Assembly: GCA_002269645.1 (NCBI GenBank)
Contig: NIVC01000425.1
Span: 1 to 29,934 of the forward strand
DNA length: 29,934 nt
DNA from: Macrostomum lignano
Taxonomy: Eukaryota
Direction of reading: 5' to 3'
Shown piece after piece: positions 1 through 29,772 of this stretch. A model generated the notes under the pieces. It saw only the letters and a program-made list of their open reading frames with translations, did not search any database and was not told the origin of the DNA. A program made the position numbers and the translations under genes. Positions within the stretch are counted from its first letter, which is position 1, and each line of letters begins with the position of its first letter.

Positions 1-2330
1 GCCTTGGGGGGTTGGCTCTCAAGGCGTTAATTGCACGAGCAGAGCCAAGCCGAGATTCCAATTCAGCCCCAAATTAATGTGACTGCACTTGAATCGAGCC
101 TGGGTCGCTGGCACACCAGAGCAGCTGCGCTACCGCTGGCTACGCCCCCCTTCGAACTGGCAAGTGGCTGCGCATTGCGTCGAGGATGACTGAGGGCTGC
201 CCAGAGTTCGAGTCGCGGAACCGTGACAAGGAGGCCTTGCTTGGTGGCTGGGGCGAGTCGAGCTTTAGCGAAGATGAGACGGCAGTAGACGCTGGAACCG
301 ACGCACTGCCAGGCGTAGATGGCAAAACCATAGGCCCCAGGAGCACCGTCAGATAAAATAACGAGACGAACTGAGTAGCTGGCGTCCTTGAATGGCGAAG
401 CGCGGCACGGTGACTTCGTTGAGGCGGAGAAAATCTGTGCGAGCTTGCCAGGCGTCTCTGATTTCAGAGCTGGCGATCTCGTCCCAGTGATCGGTGGCTT
501 GGAAAGCGAGGCGGTATAGAAGACGACCGCTGAGTATGAGTGGAGCGGCGTAACCGGCTGGGTCGTAGGGGGTGTGGACACCTTGCATAGCTTTCGGCGG
601 GTCAGTTCCTCTGGGCGTGGCAGGTTGGGCTTCTTAAGGGTGATGCGGTCTGCGTTGGTGGCCCAGGTGAGACCCAGAAGGCCGACTTTGTGGCTGCGGA
701 TGCAATCCTCATTGGGAATCGTGGAGAGGCAGTTGGCAGGTTTGTGGCAAACTCGCGAAGATGAAAGCAGGCTTGCCGGAAGAGCTCGCGAAGTCCACGA
801 CTAGTCGGGCGGCGTCTCCTCAGTGTCCGGTTCCGACGATTCTAGATTGTCGAAGTAAGAGACCACCTATGACGCGTTCGATCTCGGTACGAGTCAGAAA
901 TGTTTCTCCGGAGTTAAGAGCGTCGAGACAAATCTTGTGCAGGACTGCGAGAAGGATCCACGGCTGGGGAGAACACCCATGACGATGCGGGTGAGGCGCC
1001 ATATTTCAAAGTTGCGTCGATGAGCGGTTGAGAGATGTCTCTTGGGACAATGATACGTAGAGCGTCTCGATGGCGTTCATTGACCCCGATCTGATAGAAC
1101 GCAGCTTGGAAGTCGACGAGATGGCGAAGCGGTGGGCGCGATGGACTAAAAGGTCTTGAGTAGAGAGGTCAACAGGTTTGGTCCAGGCTCTAGAAATCAT
1201 TGAGCGTAGCGCCGGCAAGAGAGGTCTTCGCTGATGCGTCGACAACGGGCGAATTTTTGTGGTATTCGAGCTTTCCTTGATGACAGGGAAGTGCGGTAGA
1301 ACGTGAAGGATCTGCCGTTGTTGTCTCGCTGGGCGTCGACTCGCTCTAAGACTCCTTCGGCTTTCCGTTTTCGAACCGGCGTAGTAGGCTTCTCGCTCCG
1401 GGAGGCTTAGTCGCGCGGTGCGTGCCTGCGCTCGTCCTAAGGCTTGCTCGAAGTTTGATGGCAGCAGTTCAGCGCTGATTTTAAATGGCAAGTCGACTGA
1501 GATTCGACCATCAGAATCACGCGTGATGGTGTCGAGCAGGTGCTTAGTGAGCCTGTCGTCCTTGGGGTCCGGCCTTCCACATCCTTTGCTATGCCGAGAG
1601 CTTCGAGGTGGACATGTGGTCCAGGAGTCGGTCGAGGTGAAGGTTGTCGTTGTTGATTTTGAGGTAGGTGTTAGCGACGAGAACCTGAGAGGCTGAGAGG
1701 ACCGAGAAGCTGTTTGATGCTGTGGGCACCCGTGTCGTTGATGCACCGTTGAGGATAGCTCCGAAGGGCGTCAGGTAGGCCGTTAGAGTTGGTCGAAGAG
1801 CGAGGGCAGAAACTGCAGACCGGTGAGTAACTGGTTCACGTCACCACCGAGGATGAGGTCGAGGGTACGTCTGTATCGTGGTCGGGCGGGAGGTTGCAGA
1901 CGAGCCGTTGTTGACACTGCCAGGGTGTTAAGGATATCTTCAGGGAGCTTTACGGCCGGTATTTGGATCGGGGCTGCTAGCTGGTCGGAGGCGAGGGCTG
2001 TTGATTGGCCAGCGACGACCGTCTGGGGCCTGGAGGTCGAAACTGACGAGGTCCGCCGTTATCTGACGCCTGGACTCTGAGTGGAAGGTGGAGGTGGCTA
2101 TCGAGAGTCTCTTGGTGGTTTGAGGCCAAGCTTGTGGGCAACGGTGCCGTCGAGATGCGAGTACGAGCAGCCTGAGTCAAAGAAGATTGTGCAGTCGACG
2201 GAGCGGCCATCTTTTGGGTTGACGGCCTTCGCCCGGAAGGTAGCCATGATGGTCGGCAAGAGACCTCCGTCGGCTGCGGGCAGAGACTAGGGAGTTGGCG
2301 TCTCTTTGGAGTCGGCGTCCACCACTTGAA
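1..2330 (-). pseudogene. BEL/Pao pol (aspartic protease, RT, Pao peptidase_A17/RNase H-like region), fragmented
   Basis: Protease DSG at 2178-2170 in LLPT...IFFDSGCSYSHL...AHKLGL. RT catalytic YFDN at 857-846. SDGAPGAYG...FAKARLAP...TVPRLEL at about 355-230. Motifs sit in different frames with stops between them. Confidence 0.9.
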
Positions 2331-3698
2331 TTAACTGACGTGGGCGTTTTGGGCTGTCTTAGGTGGTGAGCAATGGCTGGAGCGGGCGTCGAAGGAGGCC
2401 CCGTACAGCGAAGTGTGGTGTGGGGCGTCGCACATACGACAGCGTCGGTTGTCGCGGCAGTCCTTGGTTTGGTGTCGGCGAAGGCAGTTGCGGCAAAGGT
2501 TCTTATTTCGAACGATTTTAAGCCGGTCATCGGGCTTGCGGATGTTGCAGCAGGACATGGTGGTATGTTCGGAGCTGTTGCAATAGAGGCATGGGTGGCT
2601 GGGCTTCTGCTGTTGCTGGTTGGTGGTAGGAGCGAAGCGTGCAGAGTGACGTGGTGAAGAGTTGGTGCCCGTGTGAGGAGTGGTGGACTGGCGGCGATCA
2701 CTGGGGTAGCGCGCTATTGGCGGCTGAGAGTCAGTGTTGCCCAGGAAGTCTGCGGTAGCAAAGGGCGCTGTCGGTGTAGTCGTGGCGGCAGCCCGGAGAG
2801 TCCTAAGTTTACAGTCAAGGTGGCTCTGGAGCTGTGTCATGGTTGGCACGAGAGGCTGCCCGTTGGCAGCACGAAGGTTGCCGATCTCGTTCTGCAGCTC
2901 GATCGGGAGGCGGCTCCAGAGAGCGTAGACGTAGCCGTCGAGGGTGCAGGCGGGCTCGCCAAGGCGGAGGAGCTGGCCGGTAGCGGGTCGGAGGGCGTCG
3001 GTGAAGGTCTCGAGCTCGTCTACGTCGGAGGCAGAGCTGCAGTTTAGTCCGAGGAGGCGTTGGAAGCAGGTGTCTTTCTGCTCCTGCGCGTCAGCGTAGT
3101 TAGCCTGGAGAACGCGGCAGGCCTCGGCGTAGGCGTTGGGTTGGTAGGCATCAATGGCGCCCAGCTTCCTGAGGGCGGGGCCGGATAGAAGACCGCGGAG
3201 TGCCTCGAACTTGTCGACGTCGTTGAGGCTGGATTGGTCAACGCGGTAGATGAAGGCGTCCCAGAACCCGGGAAATGCAGCAGGGTCGGTGCCGTCGAAT
3301 GTCGGGAGACGGACCTTTTTGAGAACAGTGGAGCGGATGAGCCCGGCCGGATCGTGCGCATCTAATGCGGGCGTTGAGGCAACTGGTGTCGAGGCTGGAC
3401 GGACGGTGGCGGCGAGCTGCTAAATGAGCTGCTGGTTCTGCTGCATCATCGCAGTCATTGCGGTCAGGAGGGCGTTGACGTCGACGGAGGCAGTGGGAGC
3501 TGTTGCAGATATCGGAGCCGTAGAAGGAGCAGCGGGAGGAGCAGATGTGGCGGATGAAGCGGCTGGTGGGGGGTCGCTGGCTTCGACGGGTGGCTGCTCC
3601 GTGGCAGTGGTCGCTTCTGCAGAGGCTGTGCTGTGGTCATTCTGGGACTGATGGGTCTGGTCACCAGATTGGTCAGTTATCGATCGTGTGATGACCAT
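2331..3698 (-). pseudogene. BEL/Pao gag with one in-frame nonsense codon
   Basis: ATG at 3698 (MVITRS). TAG at 3422-3420 interrupts QQLI*QLAA. The same frame continues through KVRLPTFDG..FWDAFIYRV..DVDKFEALRGLL and the boxes CLYCNSSEHTTMSC, CRNCLRRHQTKDC and CRMCDAPHH to TAA at 2333-2331. Confidence 0.9.
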
Positions 3699-3700
3699 GA

Positions 3701-3713
3701 CGCTCTGCCACCA
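3701..3713 (-). other. Primer-binding site of the BEL/Pao element
   Basis: The minus strand reads ...TTCGACA-ATTT-TGGTGGCAGAGCG: LTR end CA, 4-nt spacer, then TGG. TGGTGGCAG complements a tRNA ending ...CUGCCACCA, as some tRNA-Leu species do. The tRNA identity is tentative. Confidence 0.75.
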
Positions 3714-3717
3714 AAAT

Positions 3718-3749
3718 TGTCGAATAGACAATAAACTAATAACTAATAA
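3718..3749 (-). repeat. 3' terminal 32 bp (U5 end) of the BEL/Pao 5' LTR, cut off by the LINE insertion
   Basis: Ends in ...GACA (minus) immediately before the PBS and contains the left TSD copy. Confidence 0.8.
3738..3749 (+). repeat. Left target-site duplication AATAACTAATAA
   Basis: The identical 12-mer occurs at 9648-9659; together they flank the LINE exactly. Confidence 0.92.
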
Positions 3750-3994
3750 GCACGCGAAGGCGTATTCAGCATGCCAGTGAAGTATGAGACAGACTAGGCC
3801 CATGGGCTAAGGTCTGCGATGCTTCACGCCTGCCCCTATCTTCAGCAGGTCAAGGCTGGTGGGAGGTCTGCACCCTCTATTTGCCTCTGGCAGCCGCAGA
3901 CCCCCCCCCCCACGCTGTCTCGCAAGTCGACCCAGGGTACTCGTCCCCGCGTGTGTTCAAGGCAGTCCCTAGGGCTGCTGGACAGACTGGGCTC
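3750..3994 (+). ncRNA. HDV-like self-cleaving ribozyme at the exact 5' end of the LINE
   Basis: P1 GCACGCG(3750-56)/CGCGUGU(3948-54) with a first G.U wobble; P2 GACCCA(3929-34)/UGGG(c)UC(3988-94); P3 GGG(3935-37)/CCC(3945-47); L3 UACUCGU; P1.1 AC(3939-40)/GU(3955-56); P4 GGCAGUCC/GGGCUGCU(3961-79); J4/2 CAGAC with putative catalytic C3983. Folded by eye. Confidence 0.85.
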
Positions 3995-4269
3995 CGGCGC
4001 TGGCGACCCTATCCAGTGGCTTCGGCCGAATTTGGGTATGCGGGTCTGGCTCGCCAACCTGCAGGCCGTGGTACTGCTCAACGTACTCTCTAATGCCTAA
4101 GGTGTTGACCGTGCCGATGGGCTGGAAGGCCGGGGAGTAGTCCGGTCGCAAGCGGTCCCCCTCCTGGTGTCGGGCCAGCCTTGAGGGTGCTATTGGCCTA
4201 CTGCCCGGTCAGGTGGAGCGGCCGGGTGGGTACCGCGCCCCTTTGAGGGTAGCCCACCAACCTTTTATC

Positions 4270-5774
4270 ATGGCCTTCGAGCCGACTATGGATAAACAAG
4301 CTATTTCTAGGGACGGGGACCCTTCTAAACCCCAACCTCAGTCCGAAGGACCGGCCGGCCCTGCTGGCAGATCCCAACCGACTGATTCAACTGTGGCAAA
4401 GGAAGGACCGGCTGGCTCTGCTGGCAGATCCGACCAGAGCTACCAAACTCAAAATACCCTAAGACCTGCCAGCTCCGCTGGTGGATCTAAGGGAACCGCG
4501 AGCTCTGAGCCTAAAGGACCGGCCAAATCTGGCAGATCCGATGAAGCTCAGCGGGCTCGGCTTGAGCGCAAACGCGCTAAACAACGCGCCAAAAGGCAGG
4601 CCAAGAAGGGAGCTGCGGGGGCCAAAGCGGCGGCGTCCACCATGGATGCTGAAGCGACTGGAGTCCCAAGGCAACCAGGCGGGCCGGCCGGTGGAAGCTC
4701 CAGTAGTTCAGCGGCGGCGCTCCCTGGAGCTGCTGCCGCGGCTGCTGAGGCCGAAACCACGGCGCAACAAATGGCCACTGCCAACAAGGAGGTTCCTTCG
4801 GGAGCTACCTTTGCGGCGAAGGCCAAGGCCAAAATCCCGGGAGTGATCATCCAAGGTCGCGACCAGGACTGGACCACTGATCAGCTTCAAAAAGTGTGGA
4901 GTGCTGTTGACTCCTATCTGATTGAGCTGACTGTCGAGGAGGGAATCTCCATCGGCGTTGAGCGGATGGTGCTGCGAAGCACATTCGTTCTTATTGCTCC
5001 TAGCAGCGAGGAGGACGCTCGGCGGCTGCTCCAGCGGCTACCGACGGTCTCCTTGGATGCTGACCTTGGCGGAGCTCTTTTTCTTCGCGAGGGCCAGCGT
5101 CCAAAGACGATACCCTATGTGGTTTTCGTCCCTGCTAAGAGCACCGCAGCTGGACCAGACGTTATTCGCCGGGTCCTACTGCGTCTGAACCCCGACCTCC
5201 CTGCTAGTGGACTGGTGTATCACCGTAAAGTCCGCAGGGGGAGACGGGCAACTCAATTGTCCTCGGCCTTTCCAGCACTTGGGCGAGTCGGTACCCTAAT
5301 GGATCCTCTTTCCAGCTGGGTGCCCTCAAGCTCAAGTTGCGCCGAGGAAAGTCTGCCAAAGGGAAGGCTACTGCCAACCCCGGCATCTCCGGCAAGAGCG
5401 GGGCGCAGTCTAAGGCCCAAGGAAAGGCGCAAGCCGATCCCAAAGCCAAAGCTGCATCTCGCCCCTCTGCTAGCAGCAGTTCGGCGACCGCGGTAACGGC
5501 TCCGGCCGAGCCCCGGGAACCAAACCTGCCAGTCGGAGAAGGAGTTGAGGACGAGGCCGGGTCTTCGGAATCCGAGCTCTCCTCGGCCACCTTGGTGGGG
5601 TCTGAAGGTAAAGATGCAGGTGAGGAAGCTTCCTCCATCCTGTCATCGGAGCCTGAGGACTCTGCTGGGGGGGCCGGTGGGGGTGAGGAGGCCATGGACG
5701 TCGACCAACTCCCATCTCCCAGTCAAGCCCCAGCGGCCTGGGACGAGGACGATCTGTTGTCCAAGTCTCCTTGA
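4270..5774 (+). CDS. LINE ORF1 protein (DUF4780-like central domain), one frameshift near 5240
   Basis: ATG at 4270. Basic patch RARLERKRAKQRAKRQAKK. Central WTTDQLQKVW...YVVFVP...LLRLNPDLP region. One missing base in the G-run at about 5236-5241 joins it to the ORF-track frame 5337-5774 (GNSIVLGLS...DEDDLLSKSP*). The DUF4780 call is by pattern recall. Confidence 0.8.
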
Positions 5775-5813
5775 TGGCCCTGGGCTCTAGCCAGATATTG
5801 CATTTAATACAGT

Positions 5814-8800
5814 ATGACTAAGCTCCACGCTGCCAAAGGAGCGACATTCTGTCTGCAAATAAATTTACAGCATTGCGTATCTGCGTCAGTAAATCTGATG
5901 AAGATTGCTGAGCTGTACAGGCCAGGCCTCATCCTGATCCAGGAACCCTGGATGCGCAACGGTAAGTTGCCCAACATTCCCTCTGGCTACTCTGATTTTT
6001 ATGTGTGTGGCCCGGGGAACAGCCGCCCTAGAGCGGCTATCCTCGCTGCTAGCCATCTCCAGGCTTGGCTGAGGACTGATCTCTCTGATGGAGACCTTTG
6101 CGTCATCCAATCTAATCATTTCTCTCCGCGTACGTGTCTTGTTGCCTCGGTTTATATCCCAGGCGACAGAGACCCTGCTCCCGAGAGTTTACTGCGCCTT
6201 GCGCAGTACTGCGAGTCCCAGAACGCTGAGCTGTGCTTAGGGGGCGACCTCAACGCGCACCACAAGCACTGGGGCAGCAAAGATACCAACACTAGAGGAG
6301 AGGAGCTTCTGGCCCTCATCTCTAACACAAACCTCATGCTCTGCAACCGCGGCAGCACTCCTACCTTTAATAATGGCAGATGGACCGAGGTCCTCGACGC
6401 CACACTCGTTACCCAAGACTCTTTGACAGAGTCAAGGAGTGGAGAGTCTGGTCTGAGGAGCCCTCCCTGTCTGACCACTGCTTTATCGCCTTTAATATCG
6501 CGGACACTAAAACCCAGTCTCCGATCACTTGGAGACGCAATATCCGCAACACTGATTGGGCGGCCTACAAGGCTGCCCTTGATCTGCACCTGCAGGAACT
6601 CACGGACTTACGTCCGATTGAGACCTGCGAGGATGTGGATCATATGGCTGAGACGCTGACAGGTTGCATTATTGCAGCCTACGAAGCGGCTTGTCCTGCT
6701 CGCGCCTACAGAGGCAAGACCTCGGCGCCGTGGTGGAACCCGGAGCTGGGGAAACTCAGGCGGAAGGCCAAAAGCCTTCATCGCCGTGCCATGAAGACCG
6801 GAAACCCGGAGGACATGGAGCTTTTCCGGCAAGCCTCCCGCAATTTCAAATCTGAAGTGCGCAAGGCCAAGGAATGTAAGTGGCGCCAATTCTGCAATGA
6901 ATTGGATCAAGACAGACCTACTTCTAGGCTTGTCAAGGCCCTTACAATGGACAAAATGTCCAAATTAGCCATGATCAAAAAAGATGATGGCTCTCTTACT
7001 AAAGACCCTGAAGAAGTGCTTCAGCATATGCTTAGCACATTCTTCCCGAGGGTACCTACTGCTAGACCGGAGCCCAACCATTCGATGGATGGAGCCACCC
7101 TAGCGGCGGGCATTGTCACTGAAGACCTAATCGCTCGTGCGGTCAGAACCTTCAAACCCTTCAAATCTCCTGGACCTGATGGTATCTACCCTGTTCTCCT
7201 TCGTGAAGCAGCCAAGATACCCTCGTTCCTGAGACTCACCCGCAATCTTATGCGGGCCTCTATCCAGCTGGGATACGTTCCCAAAAGCTGGACTGAAGCT
7301 CGAGTAGTCTTTATTCCCAAACCTGGGAAGGGTGACTACCAAAGCGTCAAGGCCTTCCGGCCAATTAGCTTAACGTCAGCAATGCTTAAGCTCACTGAGA
7401 GGCTTATTCTCTGGCGGCTGCTCTCCTGCGAGCTGACAGCGATGCCCCTCAGCAATAATCAGCACGCCTTCCGTACCGGGAGGTCGACTGACAGCGCCCT
7501 GCATGCGATTGTCGAAAAGATTGAACGGGCGGTACTGGGTGACGGTTACGCCCTGGCTCTCTTTCTTGACATTGTTGGCGCCTTCGACAACGTTATCTTT
7601 GAAGCGTTTCAGAGGGCCCTTCAAAATCGCAAAGCTCATGCTACCCTCATACGGTGGATCATGTACATGATCTCCAACCGTACGGTCACTGCCCAACTTC
7701 TTGGGCAAACTGCCTCCACCAGAGTCTGTAAGGGTGGACCCCAAGGCGGAGTCCTCACCCCGACGCTCTGGAACCTGGTCATGGACGCTCTTCTGAGTGA
7801 CTCCCGACCTGACCCCGTCTTCAAAGTCGGGTATGCTGATGACGTCACGGCCATTGTGGCAGGACCGTCTCCCAGCACGCTCAGGGATCTGATGCAGAGC
7901 TTTATCCGCAAAGCAGAATCCTGGGCCAATGACAATGGTTTGGAACTCTCTGAGCCCAAAACCGTTGCCATTATGTTTACCAGCAGACTACGCTGGAACA
8001 TACGTCCTCTGCAGCTCTACGGCAGAGATATTGCCTTCGCGCACCAGACCAGATGTCTCGGGGTCACACTTGACCACCGGCTCAACTGGTCCTTCCACGT
8101 GAAAGCAAAAGCTAAGCGTGCCTCAGCCATCCTGGCCCAGCTCCGACGAGCACTTGGCACTTCTTGGGGTCTATCCCCAAAGCGGCTTTGGTGGATCTAT
8201 ACTTCCGTAGTTAGACCTGCCATTACGTACGCCTCTGTTGTCTGGGTTAGCGCTACCCAGGTCAAAAGCCATGCAGACCTGCTCAACACGATCCAAGGCA
8301 GAGCGTGTAGGCTCATCTGCAACGCCACCAGGTCCACGCCCTTTGCTGGCATGGGGGCCTTTCTTAATCTTCCGCCTCTTGACCTCTTCATCAGGGGTGA
8401 GGCGGCTAGAACGACGCGGCGTCTAATTGATGCCGGCGTCAAATTCATTTACATGAGAGCACCTGCTAAGCGGAACCTTGTCCCGCATAGCGATCTGTGC
8501 CTCAACTTTCTCAACGAGTGTCAGGCCAATCGCGTCTTCACCGATGGCATTGCCTCAACGCTCAACCTGAGACAGCGCTACTCCGTAGCTATCGACTCGC
8601 GCGATAACATCAATGACCATTGGAACCCTGGTGAGCTTCATTGCTACACCGACGGTTCTAAGCAGTCAGCCAACACCGGCTTTGGTGTTGGAATCTTTCT
8701 GAACGGGAGGGTCATCGCTACCCACGCTCAATACACTGGGGTCAACTCCAGTGTTTTCCAAAATGAAGTTCTGGCCATCAGCTCCTGCACTGCAGAGCTT

Positions 8801-9552
8801 CTCGCCACTGGCGTTACTGGTAAGAACATCATTTTCCATTCGGACAGCCAAGCTGCCTTGCACGCCATCAGTGGCTGCAGCACCAACTCTGCTACAGTCC
8901 TTGACTGTATCAAACTCCTCAATGTGTTGGGTTCCGCCAACAAAATTACCCTTAAGTGGGTTCCGGGGCATGTGGGGATCCGAGGAAATGAGTTGGCTGA
9001 CACCCTTGCAAAAGTTGGTGCCTCCGGCTCCTCTCTCGGCCCCGAACCTCTTGTCCCGATTCCTGGCTGTGTCATCGACTCGCGCATCAAAGCGTGGATC
9101 AGGACTCAGCACCGCTCGACTTGGGCGAACCGCACGAACTGCAGGCAATCCAGAGGCGCTGTCCCTCAGCCCTCTCACCAGCTCCGGAAGCTCCTCTTGC
9201 GCCTCTCGCGCAGAGACATCCGGGCTGCCACCATGACCCTCTCTGGTCACGGCTGCTTCTCCAGGCACCAGTACCTGCAGGGCAACGCCACCAACGCCAC
9301 CTGTAGTTTCTGCAACTCAGGTGACGAAACCGCTGAGCATTTCGTCAGCATCTGTCCCCCTTCACGCGGGCCAGACTCACTTACCTCGGGCCACACACAT
9401 CTATTACTGAAGCGTGCAAACCCGAAAACTTTAATCAGCTCATGCGCTACCTTCGGGCCACCCGCAGGGCTGAACTCTCCTTTCCAGAGAGCACCATAGC
9501 TGCTGGCGACACTGGGGGACCTCCCTGGGCGGCGCCAACCCTCCGTCCATAG
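5814..9552 (+). CDS. LINE ORF2 polyprotein (AP endonuclease, RT, RNase H, CCHC), two single-base frameshifts
   Basis: APE motifs QINLQH, IQEPW, GDLNAHH..WGS and LSDH. RT QGGVLTP and YADD (7832-7843). RNase H YTDGSK, HSDSQAAL and WVPGHVGIRGNELAD. C-terminal CSFC..ETAEHFVSICP. Adding one base at about 6411-6421 and one at about 9356-9360 gives one ORF ending at TAG 9550-9552. Confidence 0.9.
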
Positions 9553-9649
9553 CGACGCGTCGGCCGTTCAGGGACTAGCGGAATGGGCGCCCGCGCCTTC
9601 CCGCTGTGTCCCCTCCGGGACAGCCCTGCAGCTAAGTCAAGTAAGTCAA
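9553..9649 (+). other. LINE 3' UTR with stem-loops and TAAGTCAAG tandem tail
   Basis: Hairpins AGCGGAA/TTCCCGCT and TGTCCC-CTCC-GGGACA precede TAAGTCAAG TAAGTCAA (9633-9649). The last AA overlaps the TSD. Confidence 0.7.
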
Positions 9650-9659
9650 TAACTAATAA
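9648..9659 (+). repeat. Right target-site duplication AATAACTAATAA
   Basis: Identical to 3738-3749. Confidence 0.92.
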
Positions 9660-12438: not shown

Positions 12439-12856
12439 GGCTACCGTAGTTAAAAATCGGTTAAGCGCTTTGGACCTTGGAGACTGGATTCGGAGTGCCT
12501 GAAAAACACTTGCTGAGTATAAAGTCTGCTTAAGTCTATGCTTTGGGTGAGAGTGGCTTGCGGCTCACTTTTAATGGACCGAAGTTTTAAATTTTAGATA
12601 ATAAAAGCGTTTTTACGCGTGTAAGTTTACATTTTCAAAATAGTTTGGATTTTTTTGGTTGTGAAACTTCCAACGAACATTTAAAGCAAAAAATTTCTAA
12701 TGCGTGTCTTGACTATGGAATGCGACAGACCCATAAAAGAAAAAGCAAGGGAATTTCTTGCCTGTTCTGCAGTTCGTGAGACTTGACTTCAATGCAGAGT
12801 TGGTCCTGACGATTCTCTGGCTTCTGAGATCTCCACTTTGCGATGGAGGAGGTGGC

Positions 12857-13377
<521 letters not shown>

Positions 13378-14039: not shown

Positions 14040-14735
14040 ATGGGTCAGGCTATCAGTTCAGCGTTAATCTGTCGTCGAACCCCGGACCTCCGCATCCTAA
14101 TCTGCGGCCTAGACGCGGCCGGCAAGACATCTGTTCTGTACAGACTGAAAACTGGAGAGCTCCTGTGCACAATTCCCACCATTGGCTTCAATGTTGAGCT
14201 GGTAAGCGTGGAAGGCCGGGCAAAGCTCACTATTTGGGACATTGGCGGTCGCGACAAGATGCGCGCCTTGCACCGGCACTACTACCCGAACTCTCGCGGT
14301 GTGTTGTACATTGTGGACGGCGTAGACCGAGACCGCCTTGGCGAGTCCGTTGACGAGCTCAACAGGCTGTGCAGCGAGCTGGACGACTGCGAACTTGGCG
14401 ACATTCCGCTGGCGCTCCTGTGCAACAAGTCCGACCTGAAGCCCCAGGCCGTAGCCGAGACCTGCAATGAGCTGCGCAAGGTGGCCGCATCGATTCGAAG
14501 GCCCTGCCGCTGCTTCGAGGTCTCGGCGGCTACCGGAGCGGGTCTGGCCGAAGCCGTCGACTGGCTGATCGCCTCCGCGCTGCACGAGCTGACGAAGGAG
14601 CTGGAGAGGGAGAGCCTGCCTGAGCAGGAGGGACTTGACAAGGTCGGTGAAGTGAGCAAAGCTGCAGAGCTGACAGCAGGCTCCGGCTGGAGGAGCGGCT
14701 TGTACAGCCTGGTGAAGTCCGTGATGCTGCGGTAG
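14040..14735 (+). CDS. Arf-family small GTPase, paralog A (231 aa, intronless)
   Basis: Gly2 myristoylation site; G1 GLDAAGKT; switch [11 protein letters not shown]; G3 WDIGGR; G4 NKSD; G5 SA; C-terminal extension of about 45 aa. Confidence 0.95.
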
Positions 14736-15055
14736 TTGTGGGGACGATGCAAGAGACTTGTGCCTGCGACTTTTAAATCATGATCACTTCTGCACAGATA
14801 CACCGCATTACATTTGATTTGTATAGTAAAATACAATAACTTTTATAACGATTTTCTTTTGAAATGCTAAGAAATGCGATTAAATCAAGCTGTGTTACTG
14901 GTGTGTTCGAATTCTCCTTGGGAAATCTACATAACTAAACCTCAATATGTACTAATTTTCAGTAGGGTGCGCAGATATTTTAATTTAATTGGGTGCTAAT
15001 GATTAGGGTCTTGCATGATGGGCGCCCCAGATACGAGTCGAATCAACCTCATGTT

Positions 15056-15892
15056 GAATAGGATTGTAACCTCAAGAAGGATGGGAGTTTAACCTCAAGA
15101 AGAATGGGAGTTTAACCTCATGAAGAATGGGAGTTAAACCTCAAGAAGGATGGGAGTTTAACCTCATGAAGGATGGGAGTTTAACCTCATGAAGAATGGG
15201 AGTTAAACCTCAAGAAGAATGGGAGTTTAACCTCAAGAAGGATGGGAGTTTAACCTCAAGAAGGATGGGAGTTTAACCTCATGAAGAATGGGAGTTTAAC
15301 CTCAAGAAGAATGGGAGTTTAACCTCAAGAAGAATGGGAGTTTAACCTCAAGAAGGATGGGAGTTTAACCTCAAGAAGGATGGGAGTTTAACCTCATGAA
15401 GGATGGGAGTTTAACCTCATGAAGAATGGGAGTTAAACCTCAAGAAGGATGGGAGTTTAACCTCATGAAGGATGGGAGTTTAACCTCATGAAGAATGGGA
15501 GTTTAACCTCAAGAAGGATGGGAGTTTAACCTCAAAAAGAATGGGAGTTTAATCTCATGAAGAATGGGAGTTAAACCTCAAGAAGGATGGGAGTTTAACC
15601 TCATGAAGGATGGGAGTTTAACCTCATGAAGAATGGGAGTTAAACCTCAAGAAGGATGGGAGTTTAACCTCATGAAGGATGGGAGTTTAACCTCATGAAG
15701 AATGGGAGTTAAACCTCAAGAAGGATGGGAGTTTAACCTCATGAAGGATGGGAGTTTAACCTCATGAAGAATGGGAGTTAAACCTCAAGAAGGATGGGAG
15801 TTTAACCTCATGAAGGATGGGAGTTTAACCTCATGAAGAATGGGAGTTTAACCTCAAGAAGGATGGGAGTTTAACCTCATAAAAGATGGGAT
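15056..15892 (+). repeat. 23-bp minisatellite GRATGGGAGTTWAACCTCAWGAA, about 36 copies, with a 69-bp higher-order unit
   Basis: Direct reading. A trimer of variant units repeats in the distal half. Confidence 0.97.
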
Positions 15893-16225
15893 TTTTGCGA
15901 TAAACCAAGAGATATCCAGCTCTACGTAATGCTTTCTTTGCTCTACTGGGCCGTTGTTACAATTCCACTAAATTCTCAGACGCATCGCGGCCATGATAAA
16001 GCTCTTGTAACATTTTCAAAGAGTGCACTCAGAGTACACATGCAGAGTAAGAGATGAAGAGAGAAGCAGAGAGAAACAGGGCATACAAGTGGCGCCGTTG
16101 CTAAGTGGCAGTCTCGTACGTACGGAGGAGACAGAGGACCGGCCCGCGTACAGTCAATGTACATTCGTGCCCAGCTATAAACAAAAGCAATTCTTCTGTA
16201 GCCGTCAACCCTTTTTCCTTGTCCG

Positions 16226-16328: not shown

Positions 16329-17030
16329 ATGGGTCAGGCTATCAGTTCAGCGCTCCTCTGTCGTCGAACCCCGGACCTCCGCATCCTAATCTGGGGCCTA
16401 GACGCGGCCGGCAAGACTTCGATTCTGTACAAACTGAAAACTGGAGAGCTCGTGTTCACAATTCCCACCATTGGCTTCAATGTTGAGCAGCTTTGCATCG
16501 AAGGCCGGGCCAACCTGACCGTCTGGGACATTGGACAAGGCGGTCGGGAAAAGACGCGCGCCCTGTACCGGCACTACTACTCGAACTCTCGCGGTGTGTT
16601 GTACATTGTGGACGGCGTAGACCGAGACCGCCTTGGCGAGTCCGTTGACGAGCTCAACAGGCTGTGCAGCGAGCTGGACGACTGCGAACTTGGCGACATT
16701 CCGCTGGCGCTGCTGTGCAACAAGTCCGACCTGAAGCTCCAGGCCGTAGCCGAGACCTGCAATGAGCTGCGCAAGGTGGCCGCATCGATTCGAAGGCCCT
16801 GCCGCTGCTTCGAGGTCTCGGCGGCTACCGGAGCGGGTCTGGCCGAAGCCGTCGACTGGCTGATCGCCTCCGCGCTGCACGAGCTGCCGAAGGAGCTGGA
16901 GATGGAGAGCCTGTCTGAGCAGGAGGGACTTGACAAGGTCGGTGAAGTGAGCAAAGCTGCAGAGCTGACAGCAGGCTCCGGCTGGAGGAGCGGCTTGTAC
17001 AGCCTGGTGAAGTCCGTGATGCTGCGGTAG
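16329..17030 (+). CDS. Arf-family small GTPase, paralog B (233 aa, intronless)
   Basis: Same motifs as paralog A. G3 reads WDIGQGGR because of a 6-nt insertion. Confidence 0.95.
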
Positions 17031-17334: not shown

Positions 17335-17722
17335 TCGTTGTCGCCAGTCTTAGCATCGACTGGAAACACCAGCCTGTTGAACCTTGCCAAAGACCGGCCC
17401 AAATGGTCAAAAAATACCAACCGTTGGATTCAACGTCGTTGAAGAATCGTTGATTGAGAAAGCTGAAAACGGCAAAATACGTTGATAATCATCCCGTGGG
17501 ACGTTGCGGTGGCACTTATTTGATAACTCTGACGATATTTTTGACGTGTTCGAGGCGATAGAGGAGTCATTAGGGCAATGCGACTCACTGGGTAGCAAAG
17601 AGCAGCTGGGCCTGCCTGTGGCCAGCCATCATGGCCGACACCTGCAAGCAGATACAGCAAAATGGCCGCCACTAAACAGGTAGCGGGTGCAGACGGACTG
17701 ATTGTGGCGTTTGCAGAGGGGG
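17335..17722 (+). pseudogene. Degenerate third Arf-like sequence
   Basis: Collinear relics in shifting frames: STGNTSLL (P-loop-like), IPTVGFNV (17414-17437), WDV (17497-17505), HLFDNSD and LGLPVA. There are stops and frameshifts. Confidence 0.6.
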
Positions 17723-18196
17723 CCAAGAGACAGGGGCGCCCACCAAGAGACAGGGGCGCGTACCATGGGACAGGGGCACCCACCAAGAGACAGGGGCGCC
17801 CATCAAGAGACAGGGGCGCCCAACAAGAGACAGGGCCGCTCACCAAGAGACAGGGGCGCCCAACAAGAGACAGGGCCGCTCACCAAGAGACAGGGGCACC
17901 CAACAAGAGACAGGGCCGCTCACCAAGAGACAGGGGCGCCCACCAAGAAATAGGGGCAGCCACCAAGACAGGGGCGTCACCAAGAGACAGTGGCGCCCAC
18001 CAAGAAATAGGGGCAGCCACCAAGAGACAGGGGCGCCCACCAAGAGACAGGGGCGCCCACCAAGAGACACAAACGCCCACCAAGAGACACAAACGCCCAC
18101 CAAGAGACACAAACGCCCACCAAGAGACAGGGGCGCCCACCAAGAAATAGGGGCAGCCACCAAGAGACAGGGGCGCCCACCAAGACAGGGGCGTCA
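17723..18196 (+). repeat. 20-bp GC-rich minisatellite CACCAAGAGACAGGGGCGCC with variants
   Basis: Direct reading. It explains the repetitive ORFs on both strands here. Confidence 0.95.
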
Positions 18197-18366
18197 TCGA
18201 TCTGCTGAGCCTATATGGAGTTCTGAAAAAATTAAGACCGAAAACACAGACAATAGAGTTTGTTCTCTAACCAGATTTTTTAAATTAAAATGAGGCCGGT
18301 TTACCATTGACACAACCGGCTGAGAAAAGATGGGAGCGACTTAAATTCCACCACAACTTGCTTAGC

Positions 18367-19315: not shown

Positions 19316-19986
19316 GTTCTGACGTTGAGTTGATTTGTTAAAACGAGTTCAATTATGCTCTTATTTGAATAGTTTTCAACGAAACTTTTATTTTCCTTAA
19401 TAAAGCTTTTGTTATACTGTGTGATAAAAAATTAAAAACACCGGAAAAAAGCAAAGTTAACAAACGAAAACAAAAATAATTTTTTACTAAAACAGCGGCT
19501 ATGGCTGGCGTGTCTATGCAACAATCAGAACAAAAATAATTTTCATGTATTTGGGAAAAGGTTAAGCAGCTACAAATTTGTTAAAATTAAACAAACGGGC
19601 TTATCTTATCACGGTGCAACAATAAATTTTCGATTGATTAAAATGGGGTAAATAGCTAGTGTTCTAGCAAACGGAAGCAGGTCTCTGTATGAAAACGGTA
19701 CCTCAGGCCATGTCTGCGACTCTGAAACGACTCTGAGGCCGTAGTCAGTCGCATCTGAGGCGTGCCCGAGTCGCTGCAGAATCACTGAGTTGCGTCTAAA
19801 GCGCATTTGCGTCACTTTATGAATTAGAATCGCATTTCGCATTTATAACAACTCTATTTAGTCTACTTGAGTCAGTAGAAAGTTAAGCGCTAACACAACG
19901 ACTCTTGGATGACTTTTTCACGACTCTTTTGATTCTATAACTCACGTGATGCGCTCCAGACTCAACAACCGCTTCTCCATCGCACC

Positions 19987-21213
19987 AGTCGCTAAAAAGT
20001 CACAAGAGTTGCTCCAGAGTCGCTAGAGTCACAAGAGTCGCTCCAGAGTCGCTAGAGTCACAAGAGTCGCTCCAGAGTCGCTAGAGTCACAAGAGTCGCT
20101 CCAGAGTCGCTAGAGTCACAAGAGTCGCTAGAGTCACAAGAGTCGCTAGAGTCACAAGAGTCGCTAGAGTCACAAGAGTCGCTAGAGTCGCTCCAGAGTC
20201 GCTAGAGTCACAAGAGTCACAAGAGTCGCTAGAGTCACAAGAGTCGCTAGAGTCACAAGAGTCGCTAGAGTCACAAGAGTCGCTAGAGTCACAAGAGTCG
20301 CTAGAGTCACAAGAGTCGCTAGAGTCACAAGAGTCGCTAGAGTCACAAGAGTCGCTAGAGTCACAAGAGTCGCTAGAGTCACAAGAGTCGCTAGAGTCAC
20401 AAGAGTCGCTAGAGTCACAAGAGTCGCTAGAGTCACAAGAGTCGCTAGAGTCACAAGAGTCGCTAGAGTCACAAGAGTCGCTAGAGTCACAAGAGTCGCT
20501 AGAGTCACAAGAGTCGCTAGAGTCACAAGAGTCGCTAGAGTCACAAGAGTCGCTAGAGTCACAAGAGTCGCTAGAGTCACAAGAGTCGCTAGAGTCACAA
20601 GAGTCGCTAGAGTCACAAGAGTCGCTAGAGTCACAAGAGTCGCTAGAGTCACAAGAGTCGCTAGAGTCACAAGAGTCGCTAGAGTCACAAGAGTCGCTAG
20701 AGTCACAAGAGTCGCTAGAGTCACAAGAGTCGCTAGAGTCACAAGAGTCGCTAGAGTCACAAGAGTCGCTAGAGTCACAAGAGTCGCTAGAGTCACAAGA
20801 GTCGCTAGAGTCACAAGAGTCGCTAGAGTCACAAGAGTCGCTAGAGTCACAAGAGTCGCTAGAGTCACAAGAGTCGCTAGAGTCACAAGAGTCGCTAGAG
20901 TCACAAGAGTCGCTAGAGTCACAAGAGTCGCTAGAGTCACAAGAGTCGCTCCAGAGTCGCTAGAGTCACAAGAGTCGCTCCAGAGTCGCTAGAGTCACAA
21001 GAGTCGCTAGAGTCACAAGAGTCGCTAGAGTCACAAGAGTCGCTAGAGTCACAAGAGTCGCTAGAGTCACAAGAGTCGCTAGAGTCACAAGAGTCGCTAG
21101 AGTCACAAGAGTCGCTAGAGTCACAAGAGTCGCTCCAGAGTCGCTAGAGTCACAAGAGTCGCTCCAGAGTCGCTAGAGTCACAAGAGTCGCTCCAGAGTC
21201 GCGAGAGTCACAA
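19987..21213. repeat. 18-bp satellite GAGTCGCTAGAGTCACAA with 29-bp variants at both ends
   Basis: Built from the subunits GAGTCGCTA, GAGTCACAA and GAGTCGCTCCA. Confidence 0.98.
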
Positions 21214-21579
21214 GTGAGCAGTTTGCAATGACTCTAGTGATTCTTGACACGGTAACGTTTTCAACGGGTGAACCCCTTGAAAAATTGTTTACATTGAGAA
21301 AGAGTTGGAAAAGCACTGAGCTGAAAGTCCTCAACAATGTTATTGACCATATATCAAAATATTTTATGATATGCTACTGATTAGTTACACTAGAAAAGTA
21401 GGATGACGGAAATGTTGCAATCGGAATAGATTATACATTATCAATTTAAAGAATTCTGCAGATTTTCTGCCTGTACAGTTGTTATATTACTGGGGACTGT
21501 GACAACTGACTGCCAAGAATTGAGTGCTGAATCTGATCTTCACCTAAACAGTCGGGTACCCGATTTTAACCCAGCATTG

Positions 21580-21944: not shown

Positions 21945-22760
21945 CTTCGGCAGTCAACTGCCATGCTTCAGCATTAGCAGGATTAAAAAAGGTCCAATTG
22001 TTAACAATCCATTTCGCCATTTGGGAAAATCAACAGTGTGCTTGATGATTCTAGATTGTATTAGTTGTAGCATTAAAGTATCAACAAGGCTCCCTTGTTG
22101 CACTTTAGCTAGCCTCACAGACAGGAACTGAGTGCATTAAACAGTATTAATATGTGCACTAAAATTAATTTATAATGTACAAAAGCGAGACAATGGAGCA
22201 AAATAACACAATAATAAATAAATCACAGCAAGAATTTCTAGAATAATATATAGATCCATATGACATCTACATGAGTGCTTAAACTGACAGCTTAACAATC
22301 TGACAGTTTTGTGTCAAAAGCAGTTTATAGAAAAACCCAACAATAGACAATGAATAGTATATTAGAAGAAGATGGAGGAAGGCACAGAAACTACAGGCTG
22401 AGAAGAATATGGGCAGTTATTAATCTGTTAGGCTGAGTAATCACGATTAGTGCTGTCCTACTTATGTTAGCTAGCAATCCATTGTTCATTAAAAAGAAGG
22501 GGCAAGTGAAGATTAGGAGAATAAATTCATCAGGAATAAACAAAATCATAACCAACAGTGAGGAAAGATGCTTTCTTTTAAGTAAAAAAAACTGCTTTTT
22601 ATTTAAGGAAAGACGGCTCAGAGAGTTAAGCTGGACCGATGGTGACTGGGGCAAAATCACATTAATTCGGAATGCTAGACGAACCGCACTCAGTGAGGGT
22701 ATCGGAGACCACTGACATCGGCTTTGGAGTATTGGCAGTGACAGCAAACCCTTGCAGTCC

Positions 22761-23143
22761 TCAGGGATGGGACTGGCACACACATTGCCATTCTCAGGGA
22801 TGGGACTGGCACACACATTGCCATTCTCAGGGATGGGACTGGCACACACATTGCCATTCTCAGGGATGGGACTGGCACACACATTGCCATTCTCAGGGAT
22901 GGGACTGGCACACACATTGCCATTCTCAGGGATGGGACTGGCACACACATTGCCATTCTCAGGGATGGGACTGGCACACACATTGCCATTCTCAGGGATG
23001 GGACTGGCACACACATTGCCATTCTCAGGGATGGGACTGGCACACACATTGCCATTCTCAGGGATGGGACTGGCACACACATTGCCACTCTCAGGGATGG
23101 GACTGGCACACACATTGCCATTCTCAGGGATGGGACTGGCACA
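22761..23143. repeat. 33-bp minisatellite TCAGGGATGGGACTGGCACACACATTGCCATTC, 11 full copies plus 20 bp
   Basis: Direct reading. There is one variant base in one unit. Confidence 0.98.
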
Positions 23144-23317
23144 AGCCTCAAAATCCAAAATGCAAATATTCCAATACCCTCATTATCACAAGCGCCAATA
23201 TAGTTATTAATAAACAAGTTACGGAATCCGTATTACTGAAATTTTATCAATACATAATGCTCTCCAATAAAGTGCTCAGCAGACTGCATTTACCAACAGC
23301 GATTTTAACAAATTTGT

Positions 23318-24499
23318 TCAAATCTTTGGCAGCTTTGAGGCCGCCACGAGCGGGTTGGCTTCGCGCAGCAGTCGACGCCCCTCCGACTTGAAGTCAAAGG
23401 TGCAGGCGTGCGTCTCCGGATAGCGGTGCTTGGCGCAGTAATTGCCGCCGCACCGGCAGCCGTAGGACGTGGCCGGGCCGGTTCGCTTCTTGCAGGCGGT
23501 GCAACGCGTCGGCGAAAGCGTCGTTGTGCCTGTCGTCGTGCCTGTCGTCATCGAGTTTTCAGAGACGGCAACCGCTGTCGCAATGGGCTCCGCCGGCGGC
23601 ATTGGCGGCAGTCTGTGGCCGGATTTGGCCCGGCCGGCCAGCAAGCGGCCGGTTGTTGGCGGCGGCGCCGGAGGAGGAGGAGGAGGCGGTTGCGGCGGCT
23701 GCTGCTGCAGGGTTGGGGCGGGCGGCAGAGTGGCAGCGGGCGGAGGCGGAAGCAAAGGCGGCAGACGCCTGAAAGTTCGCTGTTGCGGAAGCGGCAGAGA
23801 CGGCGCAGGCGGGAGTGAAGGCTGAGGGGGAGGCGGCTTAGTGGATTCGCAAGCGGGCGCAGCGCCGTTCGAATTGGCAGCTGAAGATGCGGCGGCGGCG
23901 GCGGCAGCCCTGGCCTGCCTGCCCAGTCGAATTTTGTCCATCTGCTGCTGCAGTTTCTGCATTTTGTCGCGCAAAGCCCGGCCGCTATTGGGCGGATCGT
24001 CCGGCCGCTGCTGCTGCTGATGGCCGTCCCGGTTATCCCGGCGGGAGCGGCTGCCGCTGCCGATCCAGCCGGTGCGCGAGCCGGCGCTGTCGATGGCCGC
24101 CAGGGGGCTGCCGCCACCGCCGCCGCTGCTGCCACCAAGAAGCTTGTAGAATTCCAGCTGCTCTCCGTCGCGCAGCACCACCACGGTGACCTGACGGCCG
24201 CCGCCGCTGCCAGCACCCTCGATGCTTGGCGAATCGTCTGGCGGAATCAGAATTCGACGAGTGTTGATTGGGCCGCCTCGCATGCCGAGCACGAGTTTGA
24301 GCTTGCTGCCAGACGGGATCAGGTAGTCCTGCAGGCACAGATCGTCATTGAGCTCGTGATTGTTCCAGATCAGGTGCTGCTGGCTGATGGGGATGCCCTC
24401 CATTCGTTGCAGTTTGGCTTTGACGGCTAGCACTGTCTCGTAGGGTGAGACGCGCACCTCGAATACTGTGCCAGACAGGCACTCTATGTACAAGTCCAT
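23318..24499 (-). CDS. ZFAND4: AN1-type zinc finger protein with N-terminal ubiquitin-like domain (ZFAND4/ANUBL1-like), 393 aa, intronless CDS
   Basis: MDLYIECLSGTVFEVRVSPYETVLAVKAKLQRMEGIPISQQHLIW...LKLVLGMRGGPINTRR matches the ZFAND4 UBL. C-terminal CTACKKR...CRCGGNYCAKHRYPETHAC...NPLVAASKLPKI is an AN1 finger. The second Met (24499) aligns with the family start. Confidence 0.93.
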   Translation of the reverse strand: MDLYIECLSGTVFEVRVSPYETVLAVKAKLQRMEGIPISQQHLIWNNHELNDDLCLQDYLIPSGSKLKLVLGMRGGPINTRRILIPPDDSPSIEGAGSGGGRQVTVVVLRDGEQLEFYKLLGGSSGGGGGSPLAAIDSAGSRTGWIGSGSRSRRDNRDGHQQQQRPDDPPNSGRALRDKMQKLQQQMDKIRLGRQARAAAAAAASSAANSNGAAPACESTKPPPPQPSLPPAPSLPLPQQRTFRRLPPLLPPPPAATLPPAPTLQQQPPQPPPPPPPAPPPTTGRLLAGRAKSGHRLPPMPPAEPIATAVAVSENSMTTGTTTGTTTLSPTRCTACKKRTGPATSYGCRCGGNYCAKHRYPETHACTFDFKSEGRRLLREANPLVAASKLPKI

Positions 24500-25802
24500 A
24501 AGCTCTGCTGCTATTTGACAATAATTATTGAGCAAACAATTGCGCTACCCTTGCTGGACGGTTACTGCTGGTGGCTTGATGGCACAGACGGTCTTCTACT
24601 TGATGTCATTTTTATCTATATCGCATTGCCTTGCATTGCAATGGATGGAACATCAATGCATACAATGTAGCACTCATTATTAAGGATTAGAAATAACTCA
24701 TTGAATTAGTACAATTTAAATAGAAATATTTTGTTTTCAGCATATTTCATATATTCAACACAGCAATTGCATCTAAAAGTATGTCAACAGGTAAGAAAGT
24801 AAGAAATTGATTTCTAATTTTAGACCACTGCATTTTGATAATTGTAACTACTAACCTTTGGCAAAGTATACAAGCAGTGTAATTATTAGTGAATAGAGCC
24901 TATTCATAACTAGGTAAAATAGCTGAGCCTAGATTAATAAATATATATATGATATAATATAGAGGGTTAGTGGCTAATGCCTAGAGTTTAATTTTCTTAT
25001 GAAGTTGTACTAAGTAAAATGTAAAATTTTCAATCCTAATTATATGCTTAGAAATAATAAGTTTCAGGTAGAAAACCATCTAGACAATTGTTACCCTAGT
25101 CTAAAATGTCTAATAACAAAGGTAAAGGTAAATCTAGGTTTTGATTTTATAGATAAAGCTTTTAAATTTTGATGGCTACACCATAGTTCAGTAGTTCAAA
25201 TCATGCTCGGAGCATACTTAAACAAAAATCGAAGAGATACAAATGCACACCAAAAACATTTTTAATACATGTCTACACTCTCAAATCTAGGCCAGTGTTG
25301 CAACAATAAATGACCCTTTTTGACTAATAATTTGGTTGATTATTTTTCTTTCTTGCCTATACTATTATATTTATAACAGAAAATCAATATATACAAAATT
25401 TAGTTTTAATGTATTGTTAATAAGCTTAGAAGCAAGAAAGTTTGAAATTTATGCTAAAATATCAATATTTTTAGTTGTTTTTTGACTTAATACTAACTTT
25501 TCTATATGATTCTATGAAGTGCATATTAGGTATGCATACAAAATTTTCTTAAGAGTCATGCATAATTCTTAAAGGCAATACATACCCAAATTTTTGAGTG
25601 TCTATATGATCTAGAGTATAGAGGCTATAATTTTGCAATGCTATCCCTATGCTACAATAAGTGGCATATAGTGTTTTGCTATATTTATAATTTTCCAATA
25701 TCTATATCAATAGCTAATTAATAATAAGCCATGGCCCATGGCAAATTCTCAGTATTGTTAATATTACTAGTATGGATGGGCAAGATGGCTTAAAATATTA
25801 AA

Positions 25803-28330: not shown

Positions 28331-28909
28331 CTATACCAAATAAATGACTTGAAAAAATTACAGCTACAGATCAAAAGGATTTTTTACAATTTGCAAAAAA
28401 CTGGTAGTTTCTTACTATTAGATTGATATTTAATTTTGAGGACTTCTGCTTGCTTTCTGTTGCTGAAAATTGACATTTAGAACTTTACCTAGACACTAAG
28501 TGATTATCATAACTCAAACCAAACTCAAAGCTTCTTGCTCAAGAACTTTTTGAGAAAAACTGATGTTTCTATATGTATATATATATATATACATATCTTC
28601 ACAGTGCATTGGATTGTGATAATAATTTTGTTTATTTGTGTGAATATATAGTAAGACAAGCTGTTAAAACCCGCGGATTTTGAACCTAGAGAATTTCAAT
28701 CCCCGGAACTACTTTTGCATGTATTCTGAAATCTAAGGCCATACACAAACAAAAACTTGTTAATAGTTAGTAGGATAGAGGTAGACATAAAATGGACACA
28801 TTCGTGTAAAATTAGGATTTGAGGCAAACATTGATATTGTTGGCTGGGGTACTGCACAGAATGTCAGGCAATGTCTGTCTGACTCTAAAACATGTATTGG
28901 CAAACTCTG

Positions 28910-29636
28910 GCCTCTCCCTGACTCTCCCTACGTCCCTTGGATCCTTTAAAATTTCTATCGTCTCTTCTGTTTCCTCTCTTCTCTCTCATCCCTTGTCTCT
29001 CCTCTCTCTTCTCTCCTCTCTTCTCTCATATCTTCCCTCATCTCTCTTCTCTTTCATCTCTCTTATCTCTTGTCTCTTCTCTCTACTCTTTCCTCTCTCT
29101 CTCCTCTCTACTTTTCATTTTCTCTCTCCTCTCTCCTGTCTCCTCTTTCCTCTCTCTCTCCTCTCTACTTTTCGTTTTCTCTCTCTCTCCTCTCTCCTGT
29201 CTCCTCTCTACTTTTTGTACTTTTCGTACTTTTCATCTCTATCTTCCCTCATCTCTCTTCTCTTTCAAATCTCTTATCTCATCTCTTCCCTTTTCTTTTC
29301 TCTCTCCTCTCCTCTATCCTCTACTTTTTCGTTTTCTCTCTTCTCCTCTCTCTCCTCTCTCCCCCTATTCTCTCGTCTCTTCCTTCTCCTCTCTATTCTT
29401 TTCTCTCTTCTCTTAACTCTCTCCTCTCTACTCTTTCCTCTCTCTCTCCTCTCTCCCCTCTTCTCTCGTCTCTTCTCTCACCTCTTTCCTCTCATTTCTT
29501 TTCTTGTTTTATCTCTTCTCTCTCCCCTCGTTGCTCATCTCTTCCCTCACCTCTCTTCTCTCTTGTCTGCGTTTTTATCTCTCCTTTCTCTTCTTTTATC
29601 TTTTCTCTCTTATCTTTTCTCGTTTCTCTCTGCTCT

Positions 29637-29724
<88 letters not shown>

Positions 29725-29732
29725 GTCTCTCT

Positions 29733-29772
<40 letters not shown>

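Follow-up and report, generated by a model that had tools for sequence, protein, structure and literature searches.

Introduction

HDV-like ribozymes that occupy the 5′ ends of LINEs are well established, having been described for R2, R4/Dong, RTE, Baggins and L1Tc elements (PMC3774820). In R4, Dong, Baggins, L1Tc and RTE, cleavage occurs at the 5′ terminus of the element (PMC3774820). In R2 ribozymes, P1 measures 6-7 bp, P4 varies and little is conserved apart from a few core bases; J1/2 has 216-498 nt and can reach about 700 nt (PMC3774820). The RNA of the element is freed from a co-transcript by these ribozymes (PMC3774820, PMC6765202). Both R2 and R4 insert site-specifically, have one ORF only, use a restriction-like endonuclease and are co-transcribed with rRNA, and many R2 ribozymes cut upstream of the element, inside the 28S sequence. 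HDV-like self-scission depends on Mg2+ and leaves a 2′,3′-cyclic phosphate and a 5′-OH end.

Three further systems are relevant for comparison. The HDV-like ribozyme in the Pr77 segment of the trypanosomatid L1Tc/ingi elements has a +1 that coincides with the initial nucleotide of the element (PMC3185411, PMC4035085, PMC6765202). L1Tc-type ribozymes start with C (PMC4035085), and L1TcRz itself is a compact ribozyme of 77 nt that doubles as an internal promoter in its kinetoplastid hosts. Large HDV-like ribozymes can be activated by structured J1/2 domains, and in the drz-Agam-2 family the core is activated by a J1/2 helix (P1.2) that draws P1 and P2 close to each other (PMC4908430). Finally, non-LTR retrotransposons of the flatworm Schistosoma mansoni are reported to process their 5′ ends with small self-cleaving ribozymes as well, namely twister variants (PMC8501958), which differ in ribozyme class and fold from the structure described below.

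Here, we analysed a stretch of 29,934 nt of contig NIVC01000425.1 from the flatworm Macrostomum lignano (assembly GCA_002269645.1), which we call the window. It contains a LINE whose first 245 bases can be folded into an HDV-like shape, and the cut predicted from this fold falls exactly where the element starts. Like R2 and R4/Dong, this LINE shows a nested double pseudoknot at its 5′ end, in which J1/2 is large, P1 has 6-7 bp and P4 varies. As in R2, the C and G of L3 are conserved and P1 has undergone compensatory change between species. Release of the element RNA is established for R2, whereas for the window LINE it is predicted, and the cut is predicted at the junction itself rather than upstream of it. 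Unlike R2 and R4, the window LINE has an ORF1 and an ORF2 with APE, RT and RNase H domains, adjoins a BEL/Pao fragment and lies outside rDNA. Its APE-RT-RNase H organisation and 12-bp TSDs are shared with the L1Tc/ingi elements, and L1Tc-type elements are the nearest to it in protein organisation. Compared by description with L1TcRz, the candidate ribozyme is three times larger (about 245 nt), contains a 174-nt J1/2, starts with G and comes from a flatworm. A full-text literature search found no paper tying Macrostomum to an HDV-like LINE ribozyme.

Results

The element and its boundaries

The LINE and its flanking duplications have the following coordinates in the window.

3738-3749, plus strand: left copy of the TSD, AATAACTAATAA, 12 bp, identical to 9648-9659
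3750-9647, plus strand: full-length LINE (non-LTR retrotransposon) with 5′ UTR, ORF1, APE-RT-RNase H ORF2 and 3′ UTR, bounded by the TSDs
4270-5496, plus strand: ORF1, 408 aa from the first ATG, no Pfam domain
5814-9507, plus strand: ORF2 with APE, RT, RNase H and a C-terminal Cys/His motif, identified with Pfam and tblastn; frameshifted
9648-9659, plus strand: right copy of the TSD, AATAACTAATAA, a perfect match to 3738-3749

The bases outside the two TSD copies are unlike each other. Therefore, the element begins with G3750, in agreement with the first-pass annotation, which had named G3750 as the first base after the duplication. A 5′ UTR of 520 nt precedes ORF1. The Pfam domains Exo_endo_phos, RVT_1 and RNase_H in ORF2, the presence of an ORF1 and of TSDs, and the lack of LTRs identify the element as an APE-type LINE with RNase H. 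No clade (I, Nimb or Ingi type) could be assigned to it from cluster names. Membership of the R2 clade was considered and is ruled out by the two ORFs, the APE endonuclease and a flank that consists of BEL/Pao sequence and not of 28S rDNA.

ORF1 is homologous to the ORF1 of three related contigs (L001, L010 and L011), and its close relatives in an ORF1 search are M. lignano proteins only. A tblastn comparison with the intact ORF2 of L001 gave a match in three successive frames, which places frameshifts in the window ORF2 near 6413 and near 9359. With two frameshifts and no full-length protein, the window copy is a dead insertion, its TSDs still being perfect. Its upstream flank is a fragment of a BEL/Pao LTR retrotransposon on the opposite strand (Pao Peptidase_A17 at 63-581, minus strand), so no host transcription unit running into this copy is apparent. 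The BEL/Pao fragment probably reaches about position 3800, where the sequence is GC-rich and its GC skew strongly positive, and the LINE directly adjoins it in opposite orientation.

At the other end of the element, the motifs TAGCGGAATGGGCG and CCCTGCAGCTAAGTCAA are common to the 3′ UTRs of the window LINE (9540-9647) and L001 (5880-5962). In both, they are followed by a short tail of the AAGTCAAGTAAGTCAA type and not by poly(A). Judging from their sequence, the shared motifs are probably the 3′ recognition element for the reverse transcriptase of the element.

An HDV-like fold begins at the first base

A descriptor scan found a nested double pseudoknot at 3750-3991 with its strands in the order P1, J1/2, P2, P3, L3, P3′, P1′, P1.1, P4, J4/2, P2′. 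Its parts are listed below, together with a hairpin in J1/2 that is discussed further on.

3750-3756, plus strand: 5′ strand of P1, GCACGCG, 7 bp with 3948-3954; cleavage predicted at the bond 5′ of G3750
3757-3930, plus strand: J1/2 peripheral domain, 174 nt, self-paired, with a 38-pair consensus fold shared with L001
3777-3827, plus strand: conserved hairpin within J1/2, the best-conserved block of the entire 5′ UTR, with covariation in the stem
3931-3934, plus strand: 5′ strand of P2, CCCA, paired with 3988-3991
3935-3947, plus strand: P3 (GGG/CCC, 3 bp; 3935-3937 with 3945-3947), enclosing L3
3938-3944, plus strand: L3, UACUCGU, 7 nt, within P3
3948-3954, plus strand: 3′ strand of P1, CGCGUGU, paired with 3750-3756; opening pair G3750.U3954
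3955-3956, plus strand: 3′ strand of P1.1, GU; C3940-G3955 and A3939-U3956, both Watson-Crick
about 3960-3979, plus strand: P4 hairpin, present in unconstrained and constrained folds
3980-3987, plus strand: J4/2 with the candidate catalytic cytosine C3983 (C-A-G-A), a CNRA match in the window
3988-3991, plus strand: 3′ strand of P2, UGGG, paired with 3931-3934

Each helix that the first-pass annotation had listed is thus present, in the order it gave. The predicted cut site, immediately 5′ of the first nucleotide of P1, agrees with the start of the element by position, as P1 begins at G3750. L3 has the expected 7 nt inside a 3-bp P3, and its first U and its C-G are conserved. P2 has 4 bp only; the next position is an A.C mismatch, followed by G3929.U3993. 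An alternative P2 partner, UGGGU at 4033-4037, could form 5 bp with 3930-3934 and has CGAAUU just before it (4027-4037). We rejected this partner, which would enlarge the P4 domain, as its counterpart is missing in L001.

The fold is kept by compensatory change in a relative

L001, a 6,492-nt Logan contig with ORF1 and ORF2 intact, was the only relative with alignable and readable DNA in the ORF2 search. Its ORF2 is 57% identical to that of the window LINE, and the central domain of ORF1 is 38% identical. The first base of the contig is homologous to G3750. The two 5′ UTRs are strongly diverged, with BLASTN recovering one block of 41 nt and two marginal ones. MAFFT puts the core out of structural register, so pair counts were taken from a structural alignment made by hand, with nt 1 and the invariant P3-L3-P3′ block as its anchors. 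P3 starts at nt 176 of L001 and at nt 186 of the window element. P4 and J4/2 cannot be meaningfully aligned between the two sequences.

P3 is identical in both (GGG/CCC), and L3 reads UACUCGU in the window and UCUCCGU in L001, with the U at position 1 and the C-G at positions 5-6 shared by both. The surrounding helices have changed in sequence while remaining paired. In P1, which has 6 bp in L001, pairs 3 and 4 are changed on both sides. Both pairs of P1.1 are changed on both sides as well and are again Watson-Crick (U181-A195 and C180-G196). P2 is a perfect 6-bp helix in the same place in L001 (CUCAGA/UCUGAG), and two of the four shared pairs are changed on both sides. Altogether, P1, P1.1 and P2 show six both-sided compensatory changes and no broken shared pair in this manual alignment of two sequences. 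The AC/GU form of P1.1, which had been put forward as compensatory support from the window sequence, is therefore strengthened: L001 has a different, fully Watson-Crick P1.1 in which both pairs covary. The L001 contig likewise starts at the homologous G and preserves the P1, P3 and P1.1 pairing.

Other parts of the proposed fold differ between the two sequences. The P1 opening pair, described by the first-pass annotation as a G.U, is indeed G3750.U3954 in the window and is G1-C194 in L001. P4 of L001 occupies the same place and is longer, at 10-13 bp. The CNRA-type J4/2 with C3983 stands in the window, which reads GGACAGAC in this region, and is not conserved in L001, which has AGCUGC directly before P2′; the window has an extra GGACAGA. 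Cytosines are present in the L001 junction, but CNRA is absent, so the assignment of C3983 as the catalytic base comes from the window alone, without support from conservation. An alternative homology of J4/2 through a shared GCUGCU was rejected, since it would abolish P4 in the window.

A conserved hairpin in a large J1/2 insert

The long, self-paired J1/2 had been likened to those of R2 ribozymes. At 174 nt, with a conserved hairpin at 3777-3827, it bears out this likeness, for which the R2 range of 216-498 nt is the precedent (PMC3774820). BLASTN aligned a block of J1/2 to L001 with 88% identity over 41 nt, lying 33-73 nt from the 5′ end in either sequence. A consensus fold of J1/2 from the window and L001 has 38 pairs, 11 of which have both-sided changes. 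The hairpin itself (3777-3827 in the window, 28-78 in L001) has the conserved sequence GUAUGAGA..GAC.AGGCCCAnGGGCUAAGGUCUnCGAUGC; changes in its stem are compensatory, and its internal loops are asymmetric. From its sequence, the hairpin could be a protein-binding or tertiary-contact module.

Like the drz-Agam-2 family, L001 has a helix in J1/2, which in its minimum-energy fold closes this segment with 9 bp (11-19 with 153-161), and in the window a possible closing helix (P1.2) of 5 bp can be drawn from the sequence between GGCGU (3759-3763) and ACGCU (3912-3916). By analogy with large HDV-like ribozymes, P1 and P2 would be drawn together by the structured J1/2 as a peripheral domain (PMC4908430), which may in addition have a part in translation or protein binding, roles discussed for R2 (PMC6765202). 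In contrast to drz-Agam-2, the window insert is far longer, a hairpin within it is conserved separately, and there is no Rfam match to the drz family.

The fold alone is not rare, but its position is improbable

We next determined how often such a fold arises by chance. The descriptor called for 6-7 bp in P1, 3 bp in P3, an L3 of 7 nt matching U..CG., two P1.1 pairs of Watson-Crick type and at least 4 bp in P2, with CNRA before P2′ either required or not. In its anchored version, P1 had to start at nt 1 of the element. When CNRA was required, 1 of 20,000 dinucleotide shuffles satisfied the anchored strict descriptor; when it was not, 4 of 20,000 did for the window and 3 of 20,000 for L001. Without anchoring, the strict descriptor returned 10 cores from 707 kb of assorted DNA, the window core included, or approximately one per 70 kb. 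At this frequency, the fold alone is neither rare nor decisive. Two further unanchored matches lie in the window, one with weak A/T-rich helices on the minus strand and one with a 6-bp P1 at core position 1442. The improbability stems from the coincidence of the fold with an independently defined 5′ end.

Folding energies differed between the two sequences. The energy of the window region is ordinary (z = -0.94), and P1 is not in its minimum-energy fold. The nested part of the HDV-like fold lies at most 5.7 kcal/mol above that minimum, and P2 alone is worth -5.2 kcal/mol. For L001 (nt 1-237), the z-score is -2.9, and the unconstrained minimum-energy fold recovers P1, the J1/2 closing helix, P3 and P4.

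Covariance models did not recover the structure. No HDV-like Rfam family (HDV, CPEB3, drz) matched anywhere in the window at gathering score, nor did any at E ≤ 10 on window positions 3500-4500, L001, L010 and L011. These negatives weigh little, as the 174-nt J1/2 insert exceeds what the models allow and penalises any match.

The core in other relatives

Besides L001, we searched for homologues from which the 5′ end could be compared. The ORF2 search gave relatives at 57% identity (P0004 and P0005), the next ones having at most 45%. The P0004 contig starts inside ORF1, and L010 comes without a 5′ UTR. The ORF1 search returned three M. lignano UniRef gene-model fusions only, which have no DNA on record. 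An exact look-up of the window ORF2 had no match, and a profile search with the ORF1 domain gave one new match only. The N-terminus of the M. lignano protein P0010 was considered as a translated paralogous 5′ UTR and turned out not to be one.

Searches of prokaryotic and viral data likewise added no close relatives. The DNA pattern of the J1/2 hairpin was absent from the viral contigs, and its eight matches in metagenome contigs were all chance bacterial ones. A protein-profile scan of viral contigs found no relatives, and a GTDB scan found distant LINE contaminants only, at 31-37% identity. Three of the GTDB MAG contigs (L014, L015 and L016) carry full-length eukaryotic LINEs of the same clade as the window LINE, in bins assigned to Pseudomonadota, Opitutia and an unclassified bacterium. 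LINEs in such bacterial bins are likely eukaryotic contamination.

We found no HDV-like core in more distant relatives with 32-45% ORF2 identity, comprising L011 and L035 (44%) and L012, L013, L014 and L016 (32-38%). L011 and L035 are JGI metagenome contigs of one and the same related LINE with unlike upstream flanks. These differing flanks set its 5′ end at about GGGGCATGCTTGTGCCC, near position 81 of L011 and position 63 of L035, where it forms a simple terminal hairpin without an HDV-like core, so 5′-end strategies vary within the clade. Given this absence, the HDV-like feature looks limited to the lineage of the window LINE and L001.

Discussion

We consider it probable, at roughly 0.7, that the 5′ end of the window LINE is a genuine HDV-like 5′ processing ribozyme, with cleavage predicted from the sequence. 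The fold is there, in register with the 5′ end, and it has been kept up by compensatory change in one relative. Catalysis, the identity of the catalytic cytosine, read-through transcription and any role in translation are inferred. The ribozyme looks confined to one lineage of APE/RT/RNase H LINEs.

In the mechanism that we propose, functional copies would be transcribed within longer read-through RNAs, with no need for a promoter exactly at +1. The nested double pseudoknot would then form, P1 stacking on P1.1 and P4, and P2 on P3. The J4/2 cytosine (here C3983) and a Mg2+ ion held by the wobbles of L3 and of the base of P1 would act as catalysts, and the 2′-OH of A3749 would attack the bond 5′ of G3750. 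The released RNA would have a 5′-OH, and its first base would be the first base of the element, so that each round of retrotransposition is proposed to restore the 5′ end. Cap-independent translation of ORF1 or binding of element proteins may further be aided by the folded ribozyme and the J1/2 hairpin, as proposed for R2.

Alternatively, the pseudoknot might be under selection without cleaving, or after having ceased to cleave. It would then be a structured module of the 5′ UTR that might support cap-independent translation of ORF1, bind element proteins, or protect or define the 5′ end during reverse transcription, with the RNA's 5′ end set by an internal promoter. Several observations are consistent with this: the helices covary, yet the CNRA of J4/2 is not kept between the window and L001, the cleavage-site G.U is missing in L001, and the best-conserved block is the J1/2 hairpin rather than the core. 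Roles in translation and protein binding have moreover been discussed for R2 ribozymes (PMC6765202). We nevertheless regard a non-cleaving fold as unlikely. In both sequences P1 begins exactly at nt 1, the signature of an end defined by cleavage, and the C and G of L3, which are reported to be critical for R2 ribozyme activity, are kept (PMC3774820). A J4/2 cytosine is available in both the window and L001, and in active R2 ribozymes it is P4 and J4/2 that vary most (PMC3774820). In a further reading, since L001 lacks CNRA and its J4/2 directly abuts P2, J4/2 and the position of the catalytic cytosine might be free to vary in an atypical HDV-like ribozyme whose J1/2 hairpin is an obligatory activating or protein-binding module. 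We think this quite unlikely; if true, the element would combine a ribozyme with a translation or RNP-assembly unit instead of carrying a plain processing ribozyme.

Chance is the remaining explanation, according to which a GC-rich and highly structured 5′ UTR happens to match the descriptor, transcription starts from G3750 at an internal promoter, and the likeness of L001 is ordinary homology. The unanchored frequency of about one match per 70 kb of unrelated DNA, the two other matches in the window, the lack of an Rfam match, the ordinary folding energy of the window region and the absence of the fold from more distant relatives are all compatible with it. However, the match is anchored at an independently defined first base, where only 1-4 of 20,000 shuffles reproduce it. 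In addition, six pair-preserving both-sided changes without a single disruptive one, in a UTR that can barely be aligned, are not expected from ordinary homology. A chance match is thus very unlikely in our assessment.

Processing by an HDV-like ribozyme would explain the fixed starting G of full-length copies. If the ribozyme is active, it would add a lineage of flatworm APE/RT/RNase H LINEs to the elements whose 5′ ends are defined in this way (R2, R4/Dong, RTE, Baggins and L1Tc). Flatworm LINEs would in that case rely on two or more ribozyme classes, given the twister variants of Schistosoma LINEs. The understanding of HDV-like ribozymes itself is unchanged by this new example of an established strategy. 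The window LINE and L001 do provide a natural test of how variable an HDV-like core can be, as J4/2, the bottom pair of P1 and the size of P4 differ between them while P1.1, P3 and L3 are kept. The conserved J1/2 hairpin may be worth testing in a species that is open to transgenesis.

Other features of the window

Downstream of the LINE, a gene for a small GTPase of the Arf family occurs in two copies without introns (14040-14735 and 16329-17030, plus strand) at a spacing of 2.29 kb. The copies are 89-97% identical and have a 23-nt minisatellite between them. An ORF on the minus strand (23318-24535) combines a ubiquitin-like domain at its N-terminus with an AN1 zinc finger at its C-terminus. 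Dense minisatellite arrays occur at 12726-13300, 14930-16000, 17662-18255, 19940-21300, 22686-23209 and 28900-29900, with periods of 8, 23, 20, 9/18 and 33 nt, in addition to a long CT-rich tract. The GC content of the window falls to 0.28 at 25-29 kb.
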